Made by a program: the position numbers and the translations under genes
Shown here: positions 39,151 through 50,301 of the stretch, in pieces
Layout of the letters: every line of letters starts with the position of its first letter
Numbering within the stretch: position 1 is the stretch's first letter
The notes under the pieces: model-generated
What the model saw: only the letters and a program-made list of their open reading frames with translations
Told to the model about the DNA's origin: nothing
Database searches by the model: none
Assembly (NCBI GenBank): GCA_907165135.1
Contig: OU015566.1
Location: 3,472,001 to 3,536,000 of the forward strand
Reading direction: 5' to 3'
DNA length: 64,000 nucleotides
Origin: Oikopleura dioica
Taxonomy: Eukaryota > Animalia > Chordata

Positions 39151-40370
39151 TCACAAGAACTCTTCTTTGTCTCTCTTTGTGTTCGGTTTGTCACGTAGAG
39201 GAATTTGAAAAGTTGAAAACAAGGAATTCAAGTCTGAGCTCGATGAATTGGCACTCGTGATTTTCTAGGAAAAATAGGAGGGGCCACTAATTTGATCATA
39301 ATAAGACTGAGTTCCCGACAACCTCCGGGCTATTCAACAACTTCATTATGAATTTTATCTATCATGTCGTTGTGAATAAAAAAAAATTTGGTCAAAATTT
39401 CGACCAATCAGATCATCGCATTTTGTTGGTGGGCCAATCAGATTAACAATAAAATTGTCAAAAAATTCCAGTTTTTCGACTCGAGGCGCCAAAAAGTAGG
39501 CTTAAAAAAAGTTAAGAAAGAAGGCTCAATGTGTTCATTTTTATCCCTGAGATGGTCATTTTATACCTTGTTTGTTCTCAAACCAAATGCTTAGTCTTGT
39601 TCACCTCATAATTCCGCATAAATAAGCGTCATCTTGTGATGCATTATTTTCGAATCAAATAAAATAGAACGGACCGATGCTAGATTGCAATGTCTACTTT
39701 TGTACATCAATCAAATTTTGGGCTAGTTTTGATTACGGTAAAGACTCAGCGCTAGAATCTTCAAAGAGAAATGATTCAATTCGCTTAATTTAATCTCAAC
39801 ATTGATACGTCTCATGTTTTGACTTGCGTACTATTCTAGTTATTCGCCGCGCAAGATTTTTTGAAAAAATAGACCAATCAGAAGTGGCTAGATTTTGCTT
39901 AGCTCAATAGACTGAGCTGAGCTATCTGAGCTGAGGTCGAAATTGAGCTAGCTGAGCTGAGCTGGCTCTTTTCGAAGAACCATTGAGCTGAGCTGAGCTG
40001 GGTTTTTTTCAGAAAAATTGAGCTGAGCTGAGCTTAGCTGAGCTGACCTTCACCTCAAAATTGCTGAGCTGAGCTGAGCTGTAGTTCAGCTAGCTCAACT
40101 CAGCTAGCTCATAAAATTTGCAATTCTGCCACTTACCCAGACCCCTGCTTGGCTACGATCCTTGATTGTTGTCTCATGAAACTAGAGCCAATTATCCAAA
40201 AACACAAATACTTGAATTTATACCGTAAACTCCTGACTGGCCCAAATCGAGGTTTTGAGTTCGAGAATGCAAACTTTTCGTCTTTCCGTTTCTCCTTGCG
40301 CCAAAGGATCAAAAATATAAGAAGTCCTTTGGATTGTTTACTTTATAAACATATATGGCTTTATTTTTCA
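39151..40370 (-). CDS. Putative uncharacterised multi-exon gene; model uncertain
   Basis: Exon-like pieces FDPLAQGETERRKVCILELKTSIWASQEFT / FHETTIKDRSQAGVW (GT-AG joined) and KITSANSSSSDLNSLFSTFQIPLRDKPNTKRDKEEFL*. Confidence 0.3.
39890..40110. repeat. CTGAG-rich pentamer repeat (AGCTG)n
   Basis: GAGCTGAGCTGAGCT runs. Confidence 0.75.
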
Positions 40371-40630
40371 TAAATTGAGCCTGGTCTTAAATTCGTACTT
40401 GGAAATAAAATAAAATCGGACGACTATTTCGCACTGTCTATTTTTAACCTCCATTTGGGCTCTTTTTTGAGAAGCAAGAAAGTGATCATTTTTTAATCAT
40501 TATTTTCATATTGATTTATTTAAGATTTTTGAAGCAGTAAATAATTACTTGTTGCAGTAAATACAGTATAGCAGGCACGGCAAAGATAACACCTTATCAT
40601 GATTTTCCTTTATCATCATTTTGATGGATT

Positions 40631-41077
40631 CTAGAGCTCATAAAGCATGCTGTCGCCGACTTTCACGATCTTTGGGTTGTAGTTTTCGAAGCCTTGTACA
40701 CTCTAAAATAACAAAATAAATATTTTTATCGCTCAAAATTATATAAATAATATTTGCTCGGCATTCTCAATTGCTAATTTTGACCAATAAGAAGCCCGAA
40801 ATCGGCTTTATTTTTTATAATTAGCCAAAAATGAGCTTCTATTGGTCAAAAATTAGCATAAAAATAGTCAATTAAAGATTTAAGCGTCTCGAAAATGCCT
40901 TTAGAAATAATAAACCGTAAAAATCGATCAAAAACTCACCATTTCAAGTCTGTCGAGTTTCTCATAAGCATAATTGATGCTTTTCGAATCTAGTCCGGTC
41001 GATTTCAGGAGTCTCAGCAGCGTGATTTGCTCCTCTGTCATGCCATCTGTGGCTCTTCCTCCTTTCATCGGCATCAT
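40631..41077 (-). CDS. 69-aa protein consisting of an HNF1/HMBOX1-type N-terminal dimerisation (HNF-p1-like) region without a homeodomain
   Basis: Exon 1 MMPMKGGRATDGMTEEQITLLRLLKSTGLDSKSINYAYEKLDRLEM joins through a GTGAG..TTTTAG intron to exon 2 SVQGFENYNPKIVKVGDSMLYEL*. It resembles the HMBOX1 N-terminus as recalled (TIEQIDLLQRLRRTGM...LETLDRL). Confidence 0.6.
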
Positions 41078-41314
41078 ACTATTAAAAAGCATATTTTTTT
41101 TATCTCCAACTCTTTCTTTTTTTCGTTTTTTTTGTAGTGAATTTCTAGCAAACCCGCCGATTTTATGTCTGATTTTTCGCCAATTCTAGCGCCGCTTGCG
41201 AAACGCGATTTTACTTTGTTTCGTTTCCAAACAAGTCCAATTTTTTCTCATCTCGGCGAGTCTATTATTGGAGAACATGCTTAATTCGCGGAGCTTTGGT
41301 AAAACAAGACCATG

Positions 41315-42264
41315 TTAAACAAAGACCTCCAAATAAATAAAGATGTACGCTACAAGTAAGACGAAGATTACGAGCAAAAGGCTCAACCAAGTGCGGATTG
41401 AGTTGATTTCGCCGGTAAGGAATGATTAAACTGAACCTTTTATTCAAAATTTAAAGGAAAGTCTAGGCTAAGCTAGCTTTGCTCAGAGGAGCACTTAGCT
41501 AAGCAAAGCTGAGCTCTCTTTCTTTATACATGAGATAAGCTAGCTAAGCCAAATCAAAACTATCAAATCTGAGCTAAGCTTTGCTAAGCTAGATTTATTA
41601 TCCATCCCAAGCTCAGCTGAGTCCAGCCAATTTGGCTTAGTCAAGCTAAGATAAGTTTAAAATGAATCCGAGCTCATTTCCGTTTACGAATTATTTGTAA
41701 GCATTTCATACTCAGTAGAGCTTAGCCTTATCAAGCTTAGCGTTACTCAGCTTAGCTCACAAATTCTTTTGAAAGCTAAGTCTATTTGGCTAAGAATAGC
41801 TTAGTCCTCCAGATAAATTGAATTCTTATGTTAGCTAGAATAAGTTTGCGGCTTAGCTAGCTAAGCTCGAAATTTAACTGCTCTCATATTCAAGATGCCA
41901 GATTCAAATCATAAAAGCTAAATTTTCGGTCACTCAGAGTTTTCACCGTATTTCCGTCATTTATGTCAAAACAATTTTTCAATTCATGGAGCAATGCAAA
42001 AATAGAGAAAATGTTTTCTTGTTTTCACTCAAGTACCGAAATTATTTTGAGTAAATATGATAAGAATTGGAATGACGATATTCTGGGCCTTTAATTCTTA
42101 GGGCTACCCGGTTCATTTCCGTAGAAAAAACGTTTGTTCAAAGTACCGAGTATCAACTTAGGGATGAACTTTTTATTAGAAAGAGTAGGAAAAAGGAAAA
42201 ATTATATTTGCAGAATAATATCATCGTCCAGCATCATCGGAATCTCCTCGCTCAAGTCCTGCAT
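41315..42264 (-). CDS. Possible small tail-anchored membrane protein
   Basis: A terminal exon reads SFLTGEINSIRTWLSLLLVIFVLLVAYIFIYLEVFV*; a candidate first exon reads MQDLSEEIPMMLDDDILF. The splicing between them is unresolved. Confidence 0.3.
41460..41880. repeat. CTAAG/CTGAG-rich intronic repeat
   Basis: Repeated GCTAAGCTAGC and CTTAGC motifs. Confidence 0.7.
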
Positions 42265-43017
42265 TGTTTCGTTCAGATACGTGACTTTTTCGAGGTACAA
42301 AAAAGAATATTTTATACATTTAAAATAATTAAAAGGCCCTTATAGTCTATAAGTTTAAGATTTTTCGAGATTTTCCATAATTTATCTTTTTATTTGAAAA
42401 TATCTTCTTTTGCTCTCGGCATATTCAATTAAAAAAAATTTCAAAACTTAAGGGTATCCGAGTGATATTTTTGTTGGAAAAATGAAAATTGCGGCAGCAA
42501 AACTAATCTTACGCGAAATACTCTTCTTCTCTTCTGCTTGATTCGAGTCGAATAACGGTCATTTTTAAGTCATTTTTAGGTCATTTTAGGGTTTCACTCC
42601 GATATTCAATTTTCAAATAATTGACTTTTGAGTTCCTTAATCCTCGTTTAGAGATAGTTAATTGTTCAATAAAAAACTGGGTCATGATTATTAATTAATC
42701 CAAAATTGTCAATTTTTAATTGATAAAAAACATGGTCCAAGTTGTCTTTTAGTATTAATTTGATTATAAAACTTCCACCTAAAATTATCACTTCGTTCAC
42801 GTATACGATCACGATTTACCCTAGTTGGAACGGTTAAAAATAGACACGGCCCAGTTGCGCCGGCTCAACTCGCGAATTGCATTTGTTTAGCAGCAACAAA
42901 AGGACAAGCCATTACTTTTTTTGGTGAAATCATGCATCTCGCTTGTGTTCATCATAAATTGGCAAAATATTCTTGCGCAAGAAATGCGCTCAATCGAAGC
43001 GCATGATCATGAGTTAG

Positions 43018-45905
43018 TTAAAGAGAATAATTTAATCTCGTTCCTAAAAGCTTCTGGAGTTGCCCGAACTCGGCGCGGTAAGTTGTGTTGATCTTCCAGC
43101 AGTGGGTTAAGGCTTTGTAGACTTTTTCGGATCAAAAAAATGAATAAGGGAAAAATCAAAAAAAATTTTTATATTTTTTTAACGAAAATTTTTTCTTAAA
43201 ATTTTGACACCCTTATTTTGCCTCTTATTTTCAGATCCCGGCCTTGTCTGCTCATACTTTCCGGTCTTGGAGGAACCTGACCCCTGTCGATCGATGTCAA
43301 AATGTCATTCCAGCAGCGACAGTAGCCATAGGGAGTCTGGCCTCGAGTGAACATCTCCCAAACAGTGCAAGCGAAGGACCAGACATCGGAATTCGAAGTG
43401 AACTCCATCGCTCTCAGCGTTTCTGGAGCAAGCCAGTACATAAAGTCTAGAAAAAAAGGATGAGGAGGCAGAAATTGATCATTTTGACCAAAATTTTGGT
43501 CGAATTGAAAAATTTTTTTGCTTACCTCGGATTAATTCATCACCGAGTCGTTCGTGAATGTATTCGAATTCGCGGATACTCTTGATATACGCAATTTTCA
43601 CCTTCAAAAACCATCAAAAAATTCGCCAAAAATAAACAAAACCTGAAGATCAGGAGTCAGCATAAGCGTCAAGCATCGTAATTCTCGCATGACAATTCCG
43701 TAATCCGAGAGAACCTTCATCGCGGAAACAAGTTCTAAAAATATATCAACCAAAAACACTCGCTCTTGTAAATTACCAGTGACGAATCCAAAAACCATTC
43801 GGTAGGTGACTTTATTTTTCGGGTCCACCAAGTAGCTTAGAACTGATTGTTGGACGACGCCTTTTTCAGAGTTTCAAAATTTTATCCTGCCTTAGCAAAA
43901 CTTAGCCCTTCTAAGTATCTTCTTCTGTGTTTAGCTTAGCCAAGCTTAGGTAAACTAAGAAGAGTTTCAAAATTTATTTTTTGCTAAGCAAAACTTAGCC
44001 CTTCTTATCTTCTTCTTAACCAAGCTTAGCAAAGCTTAGCTAAGCTGAGCCTACTTTTAACTTGTCTTCTAAAGCTGGCCTTTAAGACCAGGGCTAAGCT
44101 AAGATAAGCTTAGTCTTCCTAGAAATGCGCTAAGCAGAGCTAAGCTTGCTTAGCTAGGAAAATAATCAAATATAGTCAAGTTTTTTAAAAACTCTCCTTC
44201 ATAGACATAAACAGGAATATCGTAGTCGTCCATAAAAATGTACTTGACATGGAGATATGCCCGATGGTTGATGTTTCGCGAAGCTTTGGCGCTCTGGAAC
44301 ATGCTTTTTGTCAACTAAAAAGGATGATTTTGGAGATAGAAAAGGGATGAAAAACCTTGATTCGATTCACCGGATCTCGTTTGATACGATCTCTCTCTTC
44401 GTCATTCCAAGTTAGGGACCAGAAAACCGGCTGGCCGACGAAATTGCCGGACATGATTCGAATTCTGAAAATAGGTTGAAAATTTTGAGAAGGGAAAGCT
44501 TAAATTTTACCCATAAGAAGTGTCAGAAAGTCGACAAAGTTGTTGATTTTCAATGTTCATTTTCTTCACATAAAAAAGGTCAATGTTCTTTTGTGGAATA
44601 AACTCCTCAATTCTCTTCGGCAACCTGACTTTGCCACGATTATGGACGGATCCGTAAAACGCAGCGCTGTGAGTTGCTTGTGGAGCTTTCATTTCTACGA
44701 ATTTTCGGCGGACGAAGCCTTTTACTGTCACATCCGCGATTCGCTTCAGACTTGTTCGTTCGACGAAGAAAAGGAAGAAGGTTGGGATGTACATTACTTG
44801 GAAAACAAGCAGCGTAACAGTCAAATATCCATTCATGAAGAGCCAGATGAGAATAAATTGCAGCAAAATGCAACAAGTCGACGTCGCCATCAGCGAAAAA
44901 AGATGCGAAATGACGACGATTCCTCGCTCGTGAAAACCAGTAATCGCCATTCGCTGAAAAGCCAACCAGATTGTCCCGCAAAGAACTAGAATTTCTTTTC
45001 TTGTTTCAAAAACGATCAACTTACGTCCAACATTGAGAAATTCAAGAACAACGGACGCGACGCAAAAGTAAATCAGCAAATTGCTTTCCATAACTCGGAA
45101 GAAGCCCCACTCGCCCTCGGGCGCGCAGCCATCGATGGAAGGAAATTTGCTGGTGAAACATTGCCGCGGGGCTGTGAGAGTACTGTTGCTTCCGGCGACG
45201 AGGTCAGGGATCCGGGAGAGGCAGAGGAAGACATTCAGCATTTGAACCACGTGAATAAGCAGCGCTGCAAAAATAAGGGCGTCAATAGCTTATCTTTCAA
45301 AGAATGCCGATTACCTGGTAGAATAGGGAGCAGTGCAAAGTATTTGCCCGACATTGGAATTCTGACAAGATCGATGTTGTATTTATCGATGTCTTCCGCC
45401 TGTCCTCTTCGGCACTCTTCCTCAAAATCCTTTCTTTCTTGGTCGAAGTTGTTGAAGTACGCAGAAAGCCGGATGGCGTAGCAAACTTGGAAGTAACAAA
45501 CGGGAACGAGGACCATGATGACAACGAGGAGTTTCGAGCTCGGGTAGCAGAGGCAGCCGGGGATGAGCTCGAAAAAGTCGATGAAAAAGAAGAGGCCGCC
45601 GATGACGCCGCAGGCGATGGACATGACGACCGCGCCATTGTAGGTTCTACGACTGAACTTGTCAAGAGATGAGTCAAATGAGGATTAAGGAGGGATATCG
45701 GTGAATATTTTTCTTCATCCTTTTTTCATCTCGATTCCTGAACATTTTGTCGGTTGCAAATGACCAGCGTGTATCTCTCAATCAAAACCCTCTTCATATA
45801 ATAAGGCAATTTATGCTTCCAAAAATACATCAAAAACATCAAATTCACCAACAAAAAGGGAATTATCATTGAAGCAGCTAGAAACTCCGAGCTTGTGATT
45901 TTCAT
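43018..45905 (-). CDS. Multi-pass (~7-8 TM) membrane protein fused to a C-terminal tyrosine-kinase-fold pseudokinase domain
   Basis: TM exons span 45905-44511. A 46-bp GT-AG intron (44465-44510) joins ...LSDTSYG in frame to IRIMSGNFVGQPVFW, followed by FQSAKASRNINHRAYL..VYVYE, GIVMRELRCLTLML, VKIAYI, YWLAPETL..FTSNSDVWSFACTVWEMFTRGQTPY and HCWKINTTYRAEF. The 5' start is uncertain. Confidence 0.8.
43890..44165. repeat. CTAAG-rich intronic repeat
   Basis: GCTTAGCTAAGCTGAGC motifs fill a GA-AG intron of the pseudokinase gene. Confidence 0.7.
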
Positions 45906-46319
45906 GTTGTAGCTAGAATTATTTCTCGGAGAAAAATCTTTTGGGTAGATAGAAAATACGAGCAAATTGGACAGGAAGCACTGGAATTTCGATTTATTGA
46001 TGACAAGTGGGGAAAAATTTTTACCAGGGTACTCGATCAATATCCGACTCTGAAAATAGATTAATTTCTATTTCAAAGAATATGATCGTAAGCAACAACC
46101 CTAAATACCAATTACAACATAATTTTATTTAAAAAAATCCCGAATTTCTATTTCGAAATCATCATTCTTGTCAGACCAACCGCATCGCCCCTGGGGCCAC
46201 CCCTGATGATCGATCATTTTGTTTCAAGATAAAATACATCTGCTGTTGTCTCCGGCCGGTTTTTAAGATCGGCGTATTTTTCAGTCTTGCCAACGAAGGA
46301 GAGAGAAAAGCGAAAGAAA

Positions 46320-46856
46320 ATGGCAAAAGTAAGTAATTTTAAACTAAAAATCTATCAGAAACAATAATTTTTCAATAAATATTTTCAAGACTGCGATCAT
46401 CACTGGGAGCTCTCGTGGTATTGGTGCTGCTTCAGCGATTCTGTTTGCGAAGAAAGGATTCAATGTCGTCCTCCAAGGCCGAAACAAGGAAAAACTCCAA
46501 GGAATCAAGGAAGAGTGCGAAAAAGCCGGAGCTGCAGGAGTTTTGGTCGTTGAACTGGAGCTTTCCAATCACGCTGGTTTGTTGATTTTTTGATTAAAAA
46601 TGATTATGTTAAGATCTTCCTCGATTGGTCGAGGAAACTATCGACGAATTCGGCGGGCTGGATGTCCTAGTCAACAATGCCGGCATGGGCTGCTTCGCCA
46701 ATCTGGAAGAAGTGACTGGAGAAATGATGGACTTGATTTTGGGCGTCAACGTCAAGGCGCCAATTTTGATCTCAAAAGCAGCAATGCCGCATTTAAAGAA
46801 ATCGAGAGGGGCCATTGTTAACGTCTCTTCCCTCGCGTCTCATGTTCGAAGCAACA
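46320..46856 (+). pseudogene. SDR copy A: 5' three exons only (truncated duplicate or alternative 5' cassette)
   Basis: MAK|TAIITGSSRGIGAA...LDVLVNNAG...GAIVNVSS is present, but no YxxxK exon occurs before copy B begins. Confidence 0.7.
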
Positions 46857-47092
46857 GTAAGTTACCGTATTGAACTGCCAAAAGACTATTTGGAAGATCA
46901 AGTCAGGCCTTTATAAAGCGATTTTTGGTCTTTTATGTCCTTGAATATGTCCTTGAGAACGAGGTATTTTTTGACCTCGAGTTGCTGACCTGCATCAAAT
47001 AACTGTAGTTTTTGTGTTTGCCCTTGTCATACAGACTAGTTCGCCCCGGAATTTTTCAATTTTCGGAAAAAAGATCATTTTTGCGAAGAAAA

Positions 47093-48145
47093 ATGGCTAA
47101 AACAGTGATTATTACCGGCAGTTCGAGAGGAATTGGTGCTGCGACGGCGATTTTATTCGCAAAGAAGGGATTCAATGTCGTGGTACAGGGAAGAAACAAA
47201 GAGAAATTGCAGCAAGTCAAGGAAGAATGCGACAAAGCTGGGGCGGCAGGAGTTTTGGCCATAGAAATGGAGCTTTCAAACACCCAAGGTGAATTATTTT
47301 TGATAAAAAATTGAGCTAAATTTAAGAACTATTTTAAGATCTGCCTCGATTGGTCACCGAAACAGTCGAAAAATTCGGCGGTCTTGATGTTCTCGTCAAC
47401 AATGCTGCCCTTGGAACGATCGGATGCAATCTTGAAAACACCACGGCAGAAATGATGGACGCTGTTTTGAATGTGAACATCAAGGCGCCGATTTTGATCA
47501 CTCAGTCTGCCATGCCTCATTTGAAGAAAACAAGAGGAGCGATTGTTAATGTTTCCTCGATGGTTTCGCATGTCAGGACGAATAGTTAGTTACAGCGAAT
47601 TTTCAAAGGCCTGACTTGATTTTCAAAGGAAAAAAAAGATATTTTTTTTACCGAAAAATAATATTTTTTTTTCTACTTTTATCCTTTTTTTTCAGATTTC
47701 TTCCCGTACGCAATTTCAAAAGCCGCCCTGGATCAATTCTCGTTGATTTTGTCAGGCAACTACGCCCCTGATGGAATTCGAGTAAATACAGTGCGCCCGG
47801 CCGCTGTGGCCACTGACATTTGGGAAACTTCTGGCGTTCCAAAGGAGATGCTCCCAGCGCTTGTGCAGATGGAAGCGGCAAAACAGCCATGTACTGGAAT
47901 GCTTACTGCAGAAGAAATTGCTCAGGATCAGTTTTTTTTTTGGCGAAAAACATTCATAATTGACAATCTCTGGCCCAAAATTTCGATTAAAAGTAGAAAT
48001 TTTTGGCGCGAGTTTTGAAAACTGAAGGAAGGCAATTTGGATGTGCTGCGATCCTGCTCTGCCCAGCATGACAGGCCAAAACATCACCATCCATGGCGGC
48101 CGAATCGAAGACAAACCGTGGGTCAACCCAATGGCCCCTCAATAA
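47093..48145 (+). CDS. Classical short-chain dehydrogenase/reductase (SDR), copy B
   Basis: TGSSRGIG, NNAA, VSS, YAISK, VNTVRP, and TGQNITIHGG. The last intron is GA-AG (47926-48031). Confidence 0.9.
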
Positions 48146-48359
48146 AGAATTTTTTTCCTGTAAGAAAAAAATTTTACAGTAATAAAGACTTCCATTCTTT
48201 ATTTCTTTCAGACTTTGGTTGAATTCAAGGATTCATCCTTGTTAAGTTTTTGCAAACGCAAATGTTTGCCTACGTTTAATTTCATTTGCTGAGTCTGCTT
48301 GTTTTTTTTTATTTTTGCAAACAAAAGGGAGATTAAAAGAGCGATAATAAAAATAATAA

Positions 48360-50112
48360 ATGGCAAAAGTAAGCTTTTTTGAATTAAAAATAAATTTGTC
48401 AGAGACAATTTTTTATTAAAAATATTCAAGACTGCGATCATCACTGGAAGCTCACGTGGTATTGGTGCTGCTTCAGCGATTTTATTTGCGAAGAAGGGAT
48501 TCAATGTCGTCCTCCAAGGGCGGAACAAGGAAAAACTCCAAGGAATCAAGGAAGAGTGCGAAAAAGCCGGAGCCGCGGGAGTTTTGGTCGTCGAACTTGA
48601 GCTTTCAAACCATGCTGGTTCGTTCGGGTAGTAGGGGGTTATCATTAGGGTAAATCACTAGTATTTTCCACTTTTTTTCTTGCTAAGTAGAGTAGGCATA
48701 TAAAATCTTTTTATAATCCTCAGAAGCTGAGGATCATTTTGATAATTGATAGTGGGGGGTCATCTCGTACCCTGAGGGCATTCTGGTACCCGGAAGTCCC
48801 AAAATGTGGCCAACTTCGGAAATTCGAATTTTCGAGGCCGTAGACGTCTAAAAAGCTTAGTTACGACCTCGAAAATTCGAATTTCCGAAGTTGGCCAAAT
48901 TTTGGGAATTCCGGGATACAAGAATGCCTTCAGGGTACGAGATGACTCCCGACTATCAATAGTCAAAATGATCCTCAGCTTCTTGGGATTATAAAAAGGT
49001 ATTATATCATATAATTTATATGCCTACTCTACTTAGCAAGAAAAAAGGTGGAAAATATTAGTGATTTACCCTAGTTATCATTCGAGCTGCCCCTAACCCT
49101 AAACCTAACCCAGGGGGCTACGCCCCCCCCCCCGGGACCCCACACATAAGGCCTTAACCAGGGGGCTTCGCCCCCCGGACCCCCCCTTAAGAGTTCCCAG
49201 TCCCTAACCCTAACCACTAGCTCAGATTCTAGAGATCTTGGATAGCTCGAATCATAGGCTCGATTCGAGCCGCTCGAATGATAGCCCCTCTCTTCGTCGT
49301 TCGTTCTATTGATAAACTGATTATGATTAGATCTCCCTCGAGTGGTCGACGAAACCATCGAAACATTCGGCGGCCTGGATGTTCTTGTCAACAATGCAGG
49401 AATCGGCTTCTTCACGAATCTCGAAGAAGTGACTGGAGAGATGATGGACATGGTTTTGGGAGTCAATCTCAAGGCGCCAATTTTGATTTCGAAAGCGGCG
49501 ATGCCGCATTTGAAGAAATCGAGAGGGGCCATTGTTAATGTTTCCTCCCTCGCGTCTCATATTCGAAGCAACAGTAAGAAAATTTTTTTGTTATTTTTTT
49601 TTGAATAACATTTTTGAGATTACTTGGCGTATGCGATTTCCAAGGCCGCGCTTGATCAGTTCTCGTTGATTTTGTCGGGCAACTACGCCCCCGACGGAGT
49701 TCGAGTAAATACAGTTCGCCCAGCCGCGGTGGCAACTGACATGTTAGTAACTTCGGGTGTTCCAAAGGAGATGCTTCCAGCGCTTGTCCAGATGAGTGCG
49801 GCAAAACAGCCATGTAACGGGATTCTTTCTGTGGAAGAAGTTGCTCAGGAACAGCTTTTGATACAACAAAATAGGGGTCTTAGATGATTTTTGTCCATAA
49901 AATTGCCCTTTATTTTGCAAAAAAAAGTGACAATTTTTATCTTTGATGTCGATTGAAAGAAAAAAATTTTGGGCGGGAAATTCAAAATCTGAAAACAGGC
50001 AATTTGGAAGTGCTGCGATCCTGCTCTTCCCAGCATGACAGGCCAAAACATCACCATCCACGGAGGCCGAATCGAAGACAAACCATGGGTCAACCCAATG
50101 GCTCCCCAATAG
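48360..50112 (+). CDS. Classical SDR, copy C
   Basis: Same motifs as copy B (TGSSRGIG, NNAG, YAISK). Intron 2 is expanded by nested MITEs; the last intron is GA-AG (49849-49998). Confidence 0.9.
48633..49289. mobile_element. Host MITE with CCCTAA tracts and GC hairpins, interrupted in its left TIR by the hAT-type MITE
   Basis: Removing 48646-49081 restores GGGGTTATCATTCGAGC, which is complementary to GCTCGAATGATAGCCCCT at 49272-49289. The interior holds CCTAACCCTAA and GGGGGCTTCGCCCCCC, as in the 10805 element. Confidence 0.65.
48646..49073. mobile_element. 428-bp palindromic hAT-type MITE with an 8-bp TSD
   Basis: GTTATCAT|TAGGGTAAATCACTA ... TAGTGATTTACCCTA|GTTATCAT; nearly the whole element folds back on itself. 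Confidence 0.9.
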
Positions 50113-50301
50113 AAACACCCTCATTCTGTCATTAATACTGTATTACTGTCAGTAATAAAGAATTCGTTTCGGACCTTGATGTTACGCAAGCTTTTTCGTT
50201 CACGGAGGAAAGGAGGTGTTTGCATTCAATAAAATTAACGGGAAGCAAATATCGCGAGTTAAATAAGCCGACAAGTGCGGTATTCGCACAGATCGTTAGA
50301 G

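Follow-up and report, generated by a model that had tools for sequence, protein, structure and literature searches.

The chordate Oikopleura dioica possesses a gene in which a membrane domain of the size of a G protein-coupled receptor (GPCR) is fused to a tyrosine-kinase (TK) domain predicted to be catalytically dead. The gene, g928 (Oidioi.mRNA.OKI2018_I69.chr1.g928, CAG5103770.1), was analyzed in a stretch of 64,000 nucleotides (the window) of contig OU015566.1, positions 3,472,001 to 3,536,000 of assembly GCA_907165135.1; coordinates below are those of the window. The public annotation represents it as a single, unnamed protein of 653 amino acids (P0014). The window belongs to chromosome 1 of the Okinawa genome, its bases 39202-48797 being identical to the genomic locus of P0014 (L007). 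It is a real, conserved, and expressed fusion gene, and its product is almost certainly one seven-pass protein whose cytoplasmic TK-type domain lacks the catalytic residues and is strongly conserved. By analogy with receptors that signal through inactive kinases, the protein is probably (about 0.6) an orphan seven-transmembrane (7TM) receptor with a tethered pseudokinase that would serve as scaffold or switch.

The initial annotation of this part of the window had proposed a single gene for a GPCR-sized polytopic domain fused to a TK-type pseudokinase, unlike the single-pass receptor pseudokinases, and this is borne out. Its description as an undescribed system was overstated: 7TM-kinase and 7TM-TK fusions have been published (PMC12716839), and the gene had already been predicted as one model. 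The 7TM-kinase architecture is known from choanoflagellates, sponges, oomycetes, and amoebozoans (PMC12716839). What seems to be new is that a chordate has it, that the kinase is dead, and that the 7TM family is an unassigned one. No description of g928 was found in the Oikopleura literature on pseudokinases, GPCRs, and seven-transmembrane proteins, a survey with most subscription journals outside its coverage. A conserved, expressed Oikopleura family would extend the 7TM-kinase architecture to chordates. Oikopleura is a laboratory animal with knockdown, in situ expression, and single-cell data, and the role of a 7TM-kinase fusion therefore becomes testable. The value of such a fusion could lie in docking and allostery instead of phosphorylation, because few parts of the protein are under as much constraint as the dead kinase. 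Homology searches gave four family types, designated A (g928 and its orthologues), B, C, and D.

Gene structure and evidence for one transcript

The gene model was obtained by three-frame reading and splicing and was then corrected using reads, orthologues, and P0014. It comprises 12 exons on the minus strand, running from 45905 to 42202, and encodes 689 amino acids in one unbroken open reading frame, which holds P0014 letter for letter from residue 37 on. P0014 starts from a Met further downstream, beyond the first transmembrane helix (TM1), which is kept in orthologues from other populations (L016, L018). The start Met is provisional; a further in-frame upstream exon near 46049-46025, with no read cover, may add about 10 residues. 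All introns measure 39-121 bp, except for two of 336 and 759 bp. Non-GT donors were found in 4 of the 11 introns (GA at 45737, 44196, and 43043; GC at 43242), and three of these four are backed by orthologue reads. GA and GC donors are usual in O. dioica.

The exact g928 sequence was found in no indexed RNA run. The RNA evidence comes from four runs carrying the same species label, mapped at 80% likeness; the mapped reads belong to a divergent population, nearly all being less than 90% identical, at a depth of 1-9 reads. The decisive junction is intron 4 (44465..44510; 46 bp, GT-AG), which had been proposed to join the membrane reading frame in frame to the kinase, with RNA spanning it as the suggested check. 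Splicing joins S-Y-G to I-R-I-M-S-G in frame and leaves the reading frame unbroken. Five spliced X6 reads, from the divergent orthologue, cross the junction. They translate to G-I-R-I-M-S-G-N-F, and 23 of 30 bases agree with the spliced model, against 9 of 30 for the unspliced continuation. Read joints or loose ends also back introns 1, 3, 6, 7, 8, 9, and 10, bringing the count to 8 of the 11 introns; introns 5 and 11 are supported by the reading frame, the public model, and orthologue L012.

A membrane protein and a kinase fragment encoded by two operon genes, joined by a false intron, would offer another explanation, in which the downstream message is trans-spliced at 44465 and starts at a Met ten bases past that position. 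Operons exist in O. dioica, an in-frame stop appears at 44507 when intron 4 is kept, and an ATG does lie just past the acceptor at 44465. The initial annotation had itself raised this explanation; it is contradicted by the five reads spliced over the junction and by member B, in which TM4-TM7, the linker, and the kinase N-lobe are encoded in one uninterrupted exon with no intron at the place of intron 4. Member C has an intron at the same codon as g928. The kinase's own beta1 strand and glycine-loop equivalent, moreover, are situated upstream of intron 4, in the membrane exon. The operon explanation is practically ruled out because of the one-exon coding in member B and this position of beta1 and the glycine loop.

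At its 3′ end the gene had been taken to stop at 43018. Intron 11 (42285..43043; 759 bp, GA-AG) leads instead to a last exon (exon 12, 42202..42284), which is derived from P0014, has no read cover, lies outside the stretch with mapped reads, and is kept in relatives. It encodes an acidic C-terminal tail (E-I-P...D-D...L-Q-I-stop; 42205-42284; L008:2211-2286) conserved in A and B and also present in L012. The terminal L-Q-I is possibly a PDZ-binding or other docking motif.

Introns of the gene differ between populations. Intron 1 (45658..45737; 80 bp, GA-AG) is supported by X6 reads and contig X7 and is absent from L016 and L018. A first guess for this intron, with a GT donor at 45788, was replaced by the GA donor at 45737, which is backed by reads and orthologues; reads at 45571-45605 were discarded as a 35-base chance match from another transcript. 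Intron 2 (45265..45314) is absent from L016 and L018, which confirms it as an intron. Intron 6 (43861..44196; 336 bp, GA-AG), supported by 4 reads, is filled with GCTAAG/CTTAGC repeats and has short inverted arms and a duplicated stretch of 90 bp; a related motif occurs at 41573. It looks like a recent gain of a repeat-bearing intron, because orthologue L012 has no intron there. The lack of introns 1, 2, and 6 in other O. dioica lineages (L016:300-900, L018:90-690, L012:60-104) points to fast intron turnover between populations, and these lineages carry introns of their own elsewhere (before residue 7, near residue 198, and near residue 339).

The membrane and kinase domains

Hydropathy analysis gave exactly seven hydrophobic peaks once intron 3 (44986..45024) was removed. 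This GT-AG intron of 39 bp is in frame and stop-free, and it is left out of P0014; two X6 reads join 44983 to 45025 with 2 letters between, and the 13 residues that the retained intron would encode are missing in relatives. Seven or eight hydrophobic segments had been counted initially; seven hold, and the eighth came from this missed intron. The eight-helix reading was accordingly discarded as an artefact. TMEM117 (PF15113, eight helices), which reached a feature score of 0.76 on the exon with the retained intron, was also rejected, as there is no Pfam match and the helices number seven.

The seven helices are distributed over four exons. Exon 1 (45738..45905), conserved in L016 and L018, encodes the provisional start Met, TM1 (45884-45822), and a basic first cytoplasmic loop. 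Exon 2 (45315..45657) contains TM2, outer loop 1 with Cys, TM3 with a conserved Arg at its end, an acidic inner loop 2, and the start of TM4, the remainder of which is encoded in exon 3 (45025..45264) together with outer loop 2 (an N-glycosylation sequon and two Cys) and the start of TM5. The end of TM5, TM6, TM7 (44824-44762), a basic helix 8, a conserved linker, and beta1 and the glycine-loop equivalent of the kinase are all found in exon 4 (44511..44985). An N-out/C-in topology fits hydropathy, charge, and the pattern of Cys and sequon. Loop 1 contains eight Lys/Arg and loop 2 two Cys; the long loop 3 is charged, and loop 4 (outer loop 2) combines two Cys with the only sequon among the loops. 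After the last helix comes a basic amphipathic segment, folded by the model as a short helix (helix 8). This is the N-out, C-in pattern of GPCRs, and the kinase is therefore placed in the cytoplasm.

Several positions are common to the family. Members A and B both have a Cys ahead of TM3, followed by an Arg at a distance of 26 residues; the corresponding spacing in class A GPCRs is 25. Common to A, B, and C are E-x-x-N in TM5, a short inner loop with G-(F/Y)-x-(E/Q)-(R/K), and a Pro in TM7 followed by E-R-T-x-x-K-R. The Atlas model of P0014, which is without TM1, aligned with olfactory/7tm_1 clusters at a TM-score of 0.54-0.55 over 224 residues. A single-sequence AlphaFold model of the whole protein (predicted local distance difference test, pLDDT, 40) was not used. 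We regard a GPCR-type fold of the membrane domain as quite probable; no family can be named for it. No ectodomain match was obtained with Pfam.

The kinase half matches PK_Tyr_Ser-Thr with E 2e-32 and 113 bits (cut-off 23) in a Pfam search of the whole protein, and Pkinase with 47.5 bits; exon 10 alone matches PK_Tyr_Ser-Thr (E 5e-16). The further exons named in the initial annotation do supply the rest of the TK domain, its beta1 strand and glycine-loop equivalent being encoded in exon 4. The closest relatives in the PDB are EGFR, RON, the Src family, MET, and Eph. Beta2-beta3 are encoded in exon 5 (44356..44464), where V-F-W-S (44427-44416) replaces the lysine motif VAVK, and alphaC (Glu to Ser) and beta4-beta5 in exon 6 (44197..44314). 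No reads span the junction of exons 5 and 6; the same layout is found in orthologue L012. Exon 7 (43777..43860) covers the hinge, alphaD, and the start of alphaE. Exon 8 (43643..43734) includes alphaE and the catalytic loop, with M-R-E...T (43690-43667) in place of H-R-D...N, and in exon 9 (43526..43601) Y-I-K replaces DFG ahead of the activation segment. Exon 10 (43243..43446) carries W-L-A-P-E, S-D-V-W-S-F, and alphaF to alphaG and ends in a GC donor, with 13 reads over the GC-AG junction; alphaH (C-W) and the subdomain XI Arg are encoded in exon 11 (43044..43121).

Compared with active kinases, the domain has lost two glycine-loop glycines, the beta3 Lys (Ser), the alphaC Glu (Ser), HRD (M-R-E), the catalytic-loop Asn (Thr), and DFG (Y-I-K, with Tyr for Asp), and it has kept the structural elements W-x-A-P-E, D-V-W, and the subdomain XI Arg. 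Two of the degenerate motifs named in the initial annotation, VFWS for the VAIK lysine and MRE for HRD, were read correctly; DFG in register corresponds to Y-I-K and not to A-Y-I. Judged by its residues, the domain is a TK-type pseudokinase. Identity to an orthologue of another population is 96% in the kinase and 92% in the 7TM part, with ratios of nonsynonymous to synonymous substitution (dN/dS) of ~0.009 and 0.036, respectively, rough values obtained by seed-based matching with synonymous sites near saturation. Such strong conservation excludes a decaying pseudogene, and on this comparison the kinase domain is under strong purifying selection.

Family members and related proteins

Member B, from a compact genome, has ~31% identity to g928 across the membrane part and 45% across the kinase. 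It is probably an O. dioica paralogue, because it was seen together with A in three samples. Member C comes from an AT-rich genome with longer introns. Member D (L015:397-1068), a more divergent fragment known from the kinase part alone, keeps the alphaC Glu. All three are marine metagenome contigs, which we infer to come from larvaceans. In A, B, and C the beta3 Lys is missing and a Tyr takes the place of the DFG Asp, and x-R-E for HRD and Thr/Ser for Asn are found in A to D. A neighbor of member B (L001:4388-5233; P0078, P0079) encodes a signal peptide, a long Pro/Gly/Thr-rich region, and a Cys-rich C-terminal domain, and by these features resembles a secreted house (oikosin-like) protein.

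In the kinase tree, which was limited to 20 search hits and leaves out PTK7, RYK, ROR, and the sponge and choanoflagellate GPCR-TKs, the family is a single clade (100/100) with a long stem, within which A pairs with C (95/91); none of the sampled TK families (EGFR, TAM, JAK, ROS) is sister to it. A single-sequence search of the membrane exon against 1.84 billion representatives returned five matches only, all within the g928 family, and a search among full-length candidates added none from outside it. When the membrane exon or residues 1-400 served as query, word-indexed searches gave only O. dioica-type fragments, a blank that is weak owing to length and word limits. The search with the kinase gave ordinary TKs only; its top match was P0020 (L009:329-2170, a Logan contig), an unrelated tandem-kinase protein that has no membrane domain and in which two complete tyrosine-kinase domains precede the beginning of a third.

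The receptor tyrosine pseudokinases PTK7, RYK, ROR1/2, EphA10, EphB6, and HER3 are single-pass proteins with folded ectodomains. The g928 protein resembles them in carrying a cytoplasmic TK-type pseudokinase that is conserved without catalysis and that has a likely scaffold or allosteric role, and it differs in its seven helices and its lack of an ectodomain. Like class A and other GPCR-fold proteins (7tm_1, TAS2R, Ste2; GPR137/TOM1/PRRT3), it has seven helices and a helix 8, an N-out/C-in orientation, cysteines in both of the first two outer loops, an Arg where TM3 reaches the inner face, and a Pro in TM7; its structural matches to this group are weak. It differs from them in having no Pfam match and no DRY or NPxxY, in a very short inner loop 3, and in the fused kinase-fold domain.

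GPCR-TKL/K and GPCR-TK proteins have been described in choanoflagellates, and GPCR-TKs also in sponges and in no other metazoan sampled; the sampling included Ciona and Branchiostoma and not Oikopleura (PMC12716839). Fusions of 7TM domains with kinases are further cited for oomycetes and amoebozoans, and GPCR-TKL/K for acanthoecids. These fusions are concluded to have arisen repeatedly, and none has been functionally characterized; the word pseudokinase is never used in that study (PMC12716839). The choanoflagellate and sponge GPCR-TKs resemble g928 in joining an N-terminal 7TM part and a C-terminal TK or kinase domain in one chain, and in having a 7TM part that cannot be assigned to a classical GPCR family. 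In contrast to them, g928 occurs in a chordate and belongs to a family with a dead kinase throughout; single-sequence database searches, which included no direct comparison, detected no similarity between the sequences of the 7TM parts. GPCR-PIPK receptors of Dictyostelium, oomycetes, and choanoflagellates are also 7TM proteins with a built-in C-terminal kinase-type domain; theirs is a lipid (phosphatidylinositol phosphate, PIP) kinase with an LR(x)9GI linker motif, whereas that of g928 is a protein tyrosine pseudokinase (PMC12716839).

Proposed function, alternatives, and neighboring genes

As a receptor, g928 might work as follows. A small ligand or peptide would bind the outer loops, of which outer loop 2 would be disulfide-stabilized and glycosylated, and binding would shift the helix bundle. 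The pseudokinase, probably incapable of normal ATP or Mg binding, would be kept beside the inner face by helix 8 and the conserved linker and could act as a conformational switch and docking platform, exposing or hiding the inner face of the receptor. Partners recruited in this way might be an active kinase or an adaptor or, by way of the conserved acidic tail, a PDZ protein. PTK7, RYK, ROR, and HER3 signal without catalysis, and g928 could signal in the same manner. Most likely the fusion was made within larvaceans and is separate in origin from the GPCR-TKs of sponges and choanoflagellates. More tentatively, with odds that we place below even, larvaceans may have independently built a chordate family of 7TM receptors that signals via an attached tyrosine pseudokinase instead of G proteins, or gates them. 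This 7TM lineage would be one without recognizable relatives, and it is equally tentative that it combines GPCR-type sensing and PTK7/RYK-type non-catalytic signaling in one chain.

A number of observations weigh against the receptor interpretation. The membrane part matched no Pfam family and, in a PDB profile search by sequence, no solved structure. No DRY or NPxxY motif was found in it; only the Arg at the end of TM3 and the TM7 Pro are present. Our own fold model, built from 13 sequences and lacking TM1, is weak (pLDDT 50; predicted template-modeling score, pTM, 0.47). The VIA structure list for this model does favor a 7TM fold, with microbial rhodopsins leading at Z 9-11 (maximum 10.9) and GPCRs at Z 7.7-8.8, including TAS2R14, Ste2, 5-HT2C, and CB1 at Z 8.5-8.8; in most of these alignments the match begins only with helix 2 of the target, in keeping with the absence of TM1 from the query. 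All these values fall below 13, however, a range ordinary for helical bundles. Foldseek with the same model ranked GPCRs first and returned nothing at E ≤ 0.001 (E > 0.8), and an Atlas search with it gave no 7TM match. The receptor role, with its ligand, partner, localization, and activity, is inferred; the read support is thin and comes from an orthologue population; and the tree behind the question of origin does not contain the sponge and choanoflagellate GPCR-TKs.

The main rival, which we find rather unlikely, accepts the fusion as real and takes the seven-pass part for a trafficking chaperone, lipid-handling enzyme, or channel, modeled on TMEM87/GOST, AdipoR, or GPR137/TOM1-type proteins, with the pseudokinase in a regulatory or scaffolding role. 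The missing classical GPCR motifs agree with it, and so do the AdipoR2, TMEM87A, rhodopsin pump, and pannexin entries at similar Z in the VIA list; the nearest feature neighbors, clusters of GPR137_N, TOM1/THH1, PRRT3, and UCP031277 at 0.79-0.83, are a lead only. A receptor layout is nevertheless matched by the conserved outer-loop Cys, the long glycosylated outer loop 2, the TM3-end Arg, and the TM7 Pro followed by basic helix 8, and TM7 has no retinal Lys in A, B, or C.

Descent from the sponge or choanoflagellate GPCR-TKs, vertical or by transfer, would make g928 a degenerate member of that group and not a new larvacean fusion. Larvacean proteins evolve fast enough to hide homology. The order of domains, 7TM then TK, is the same (PMC12716839). 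We consider this origin improbable, however: GPCR-TKs were found in no other tested metazoan, including Ciona and Branchiostoma, their 7TM parts are unrelated even among themselves (PMC12716839), and all five matches to the membrane exon belong to the g928 family. It is very improbable that the kinase keeps an atypical low activity or nucleotide binding, through Arg-Glu for Arg-Asp and relocated basic residues, and that g928 is a true 7TM-kinase. Some predicted pseudokinases have proved active, x-R-E is invariant in the four members, and the C-lobe is highly conserved; against this stand the joint loss of the beta3 Lys, alphaC Glu, catalytic Asp, Mg-binding Asn, DFG Asp, and two glycine-loop glycines, and the Tyr shared by A, B, and C at the DFG Asp position.

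At a distance of ~400 bp from g928, and head to head with it, a tandem array of short-chain dehydrogenase (adh_short) genes lies on the plus strand (46330-50135), with no fewer than three near-identical copies. The public annotation seems to fuse two of the dehydrogenase copies into one model of 403 amino acids.

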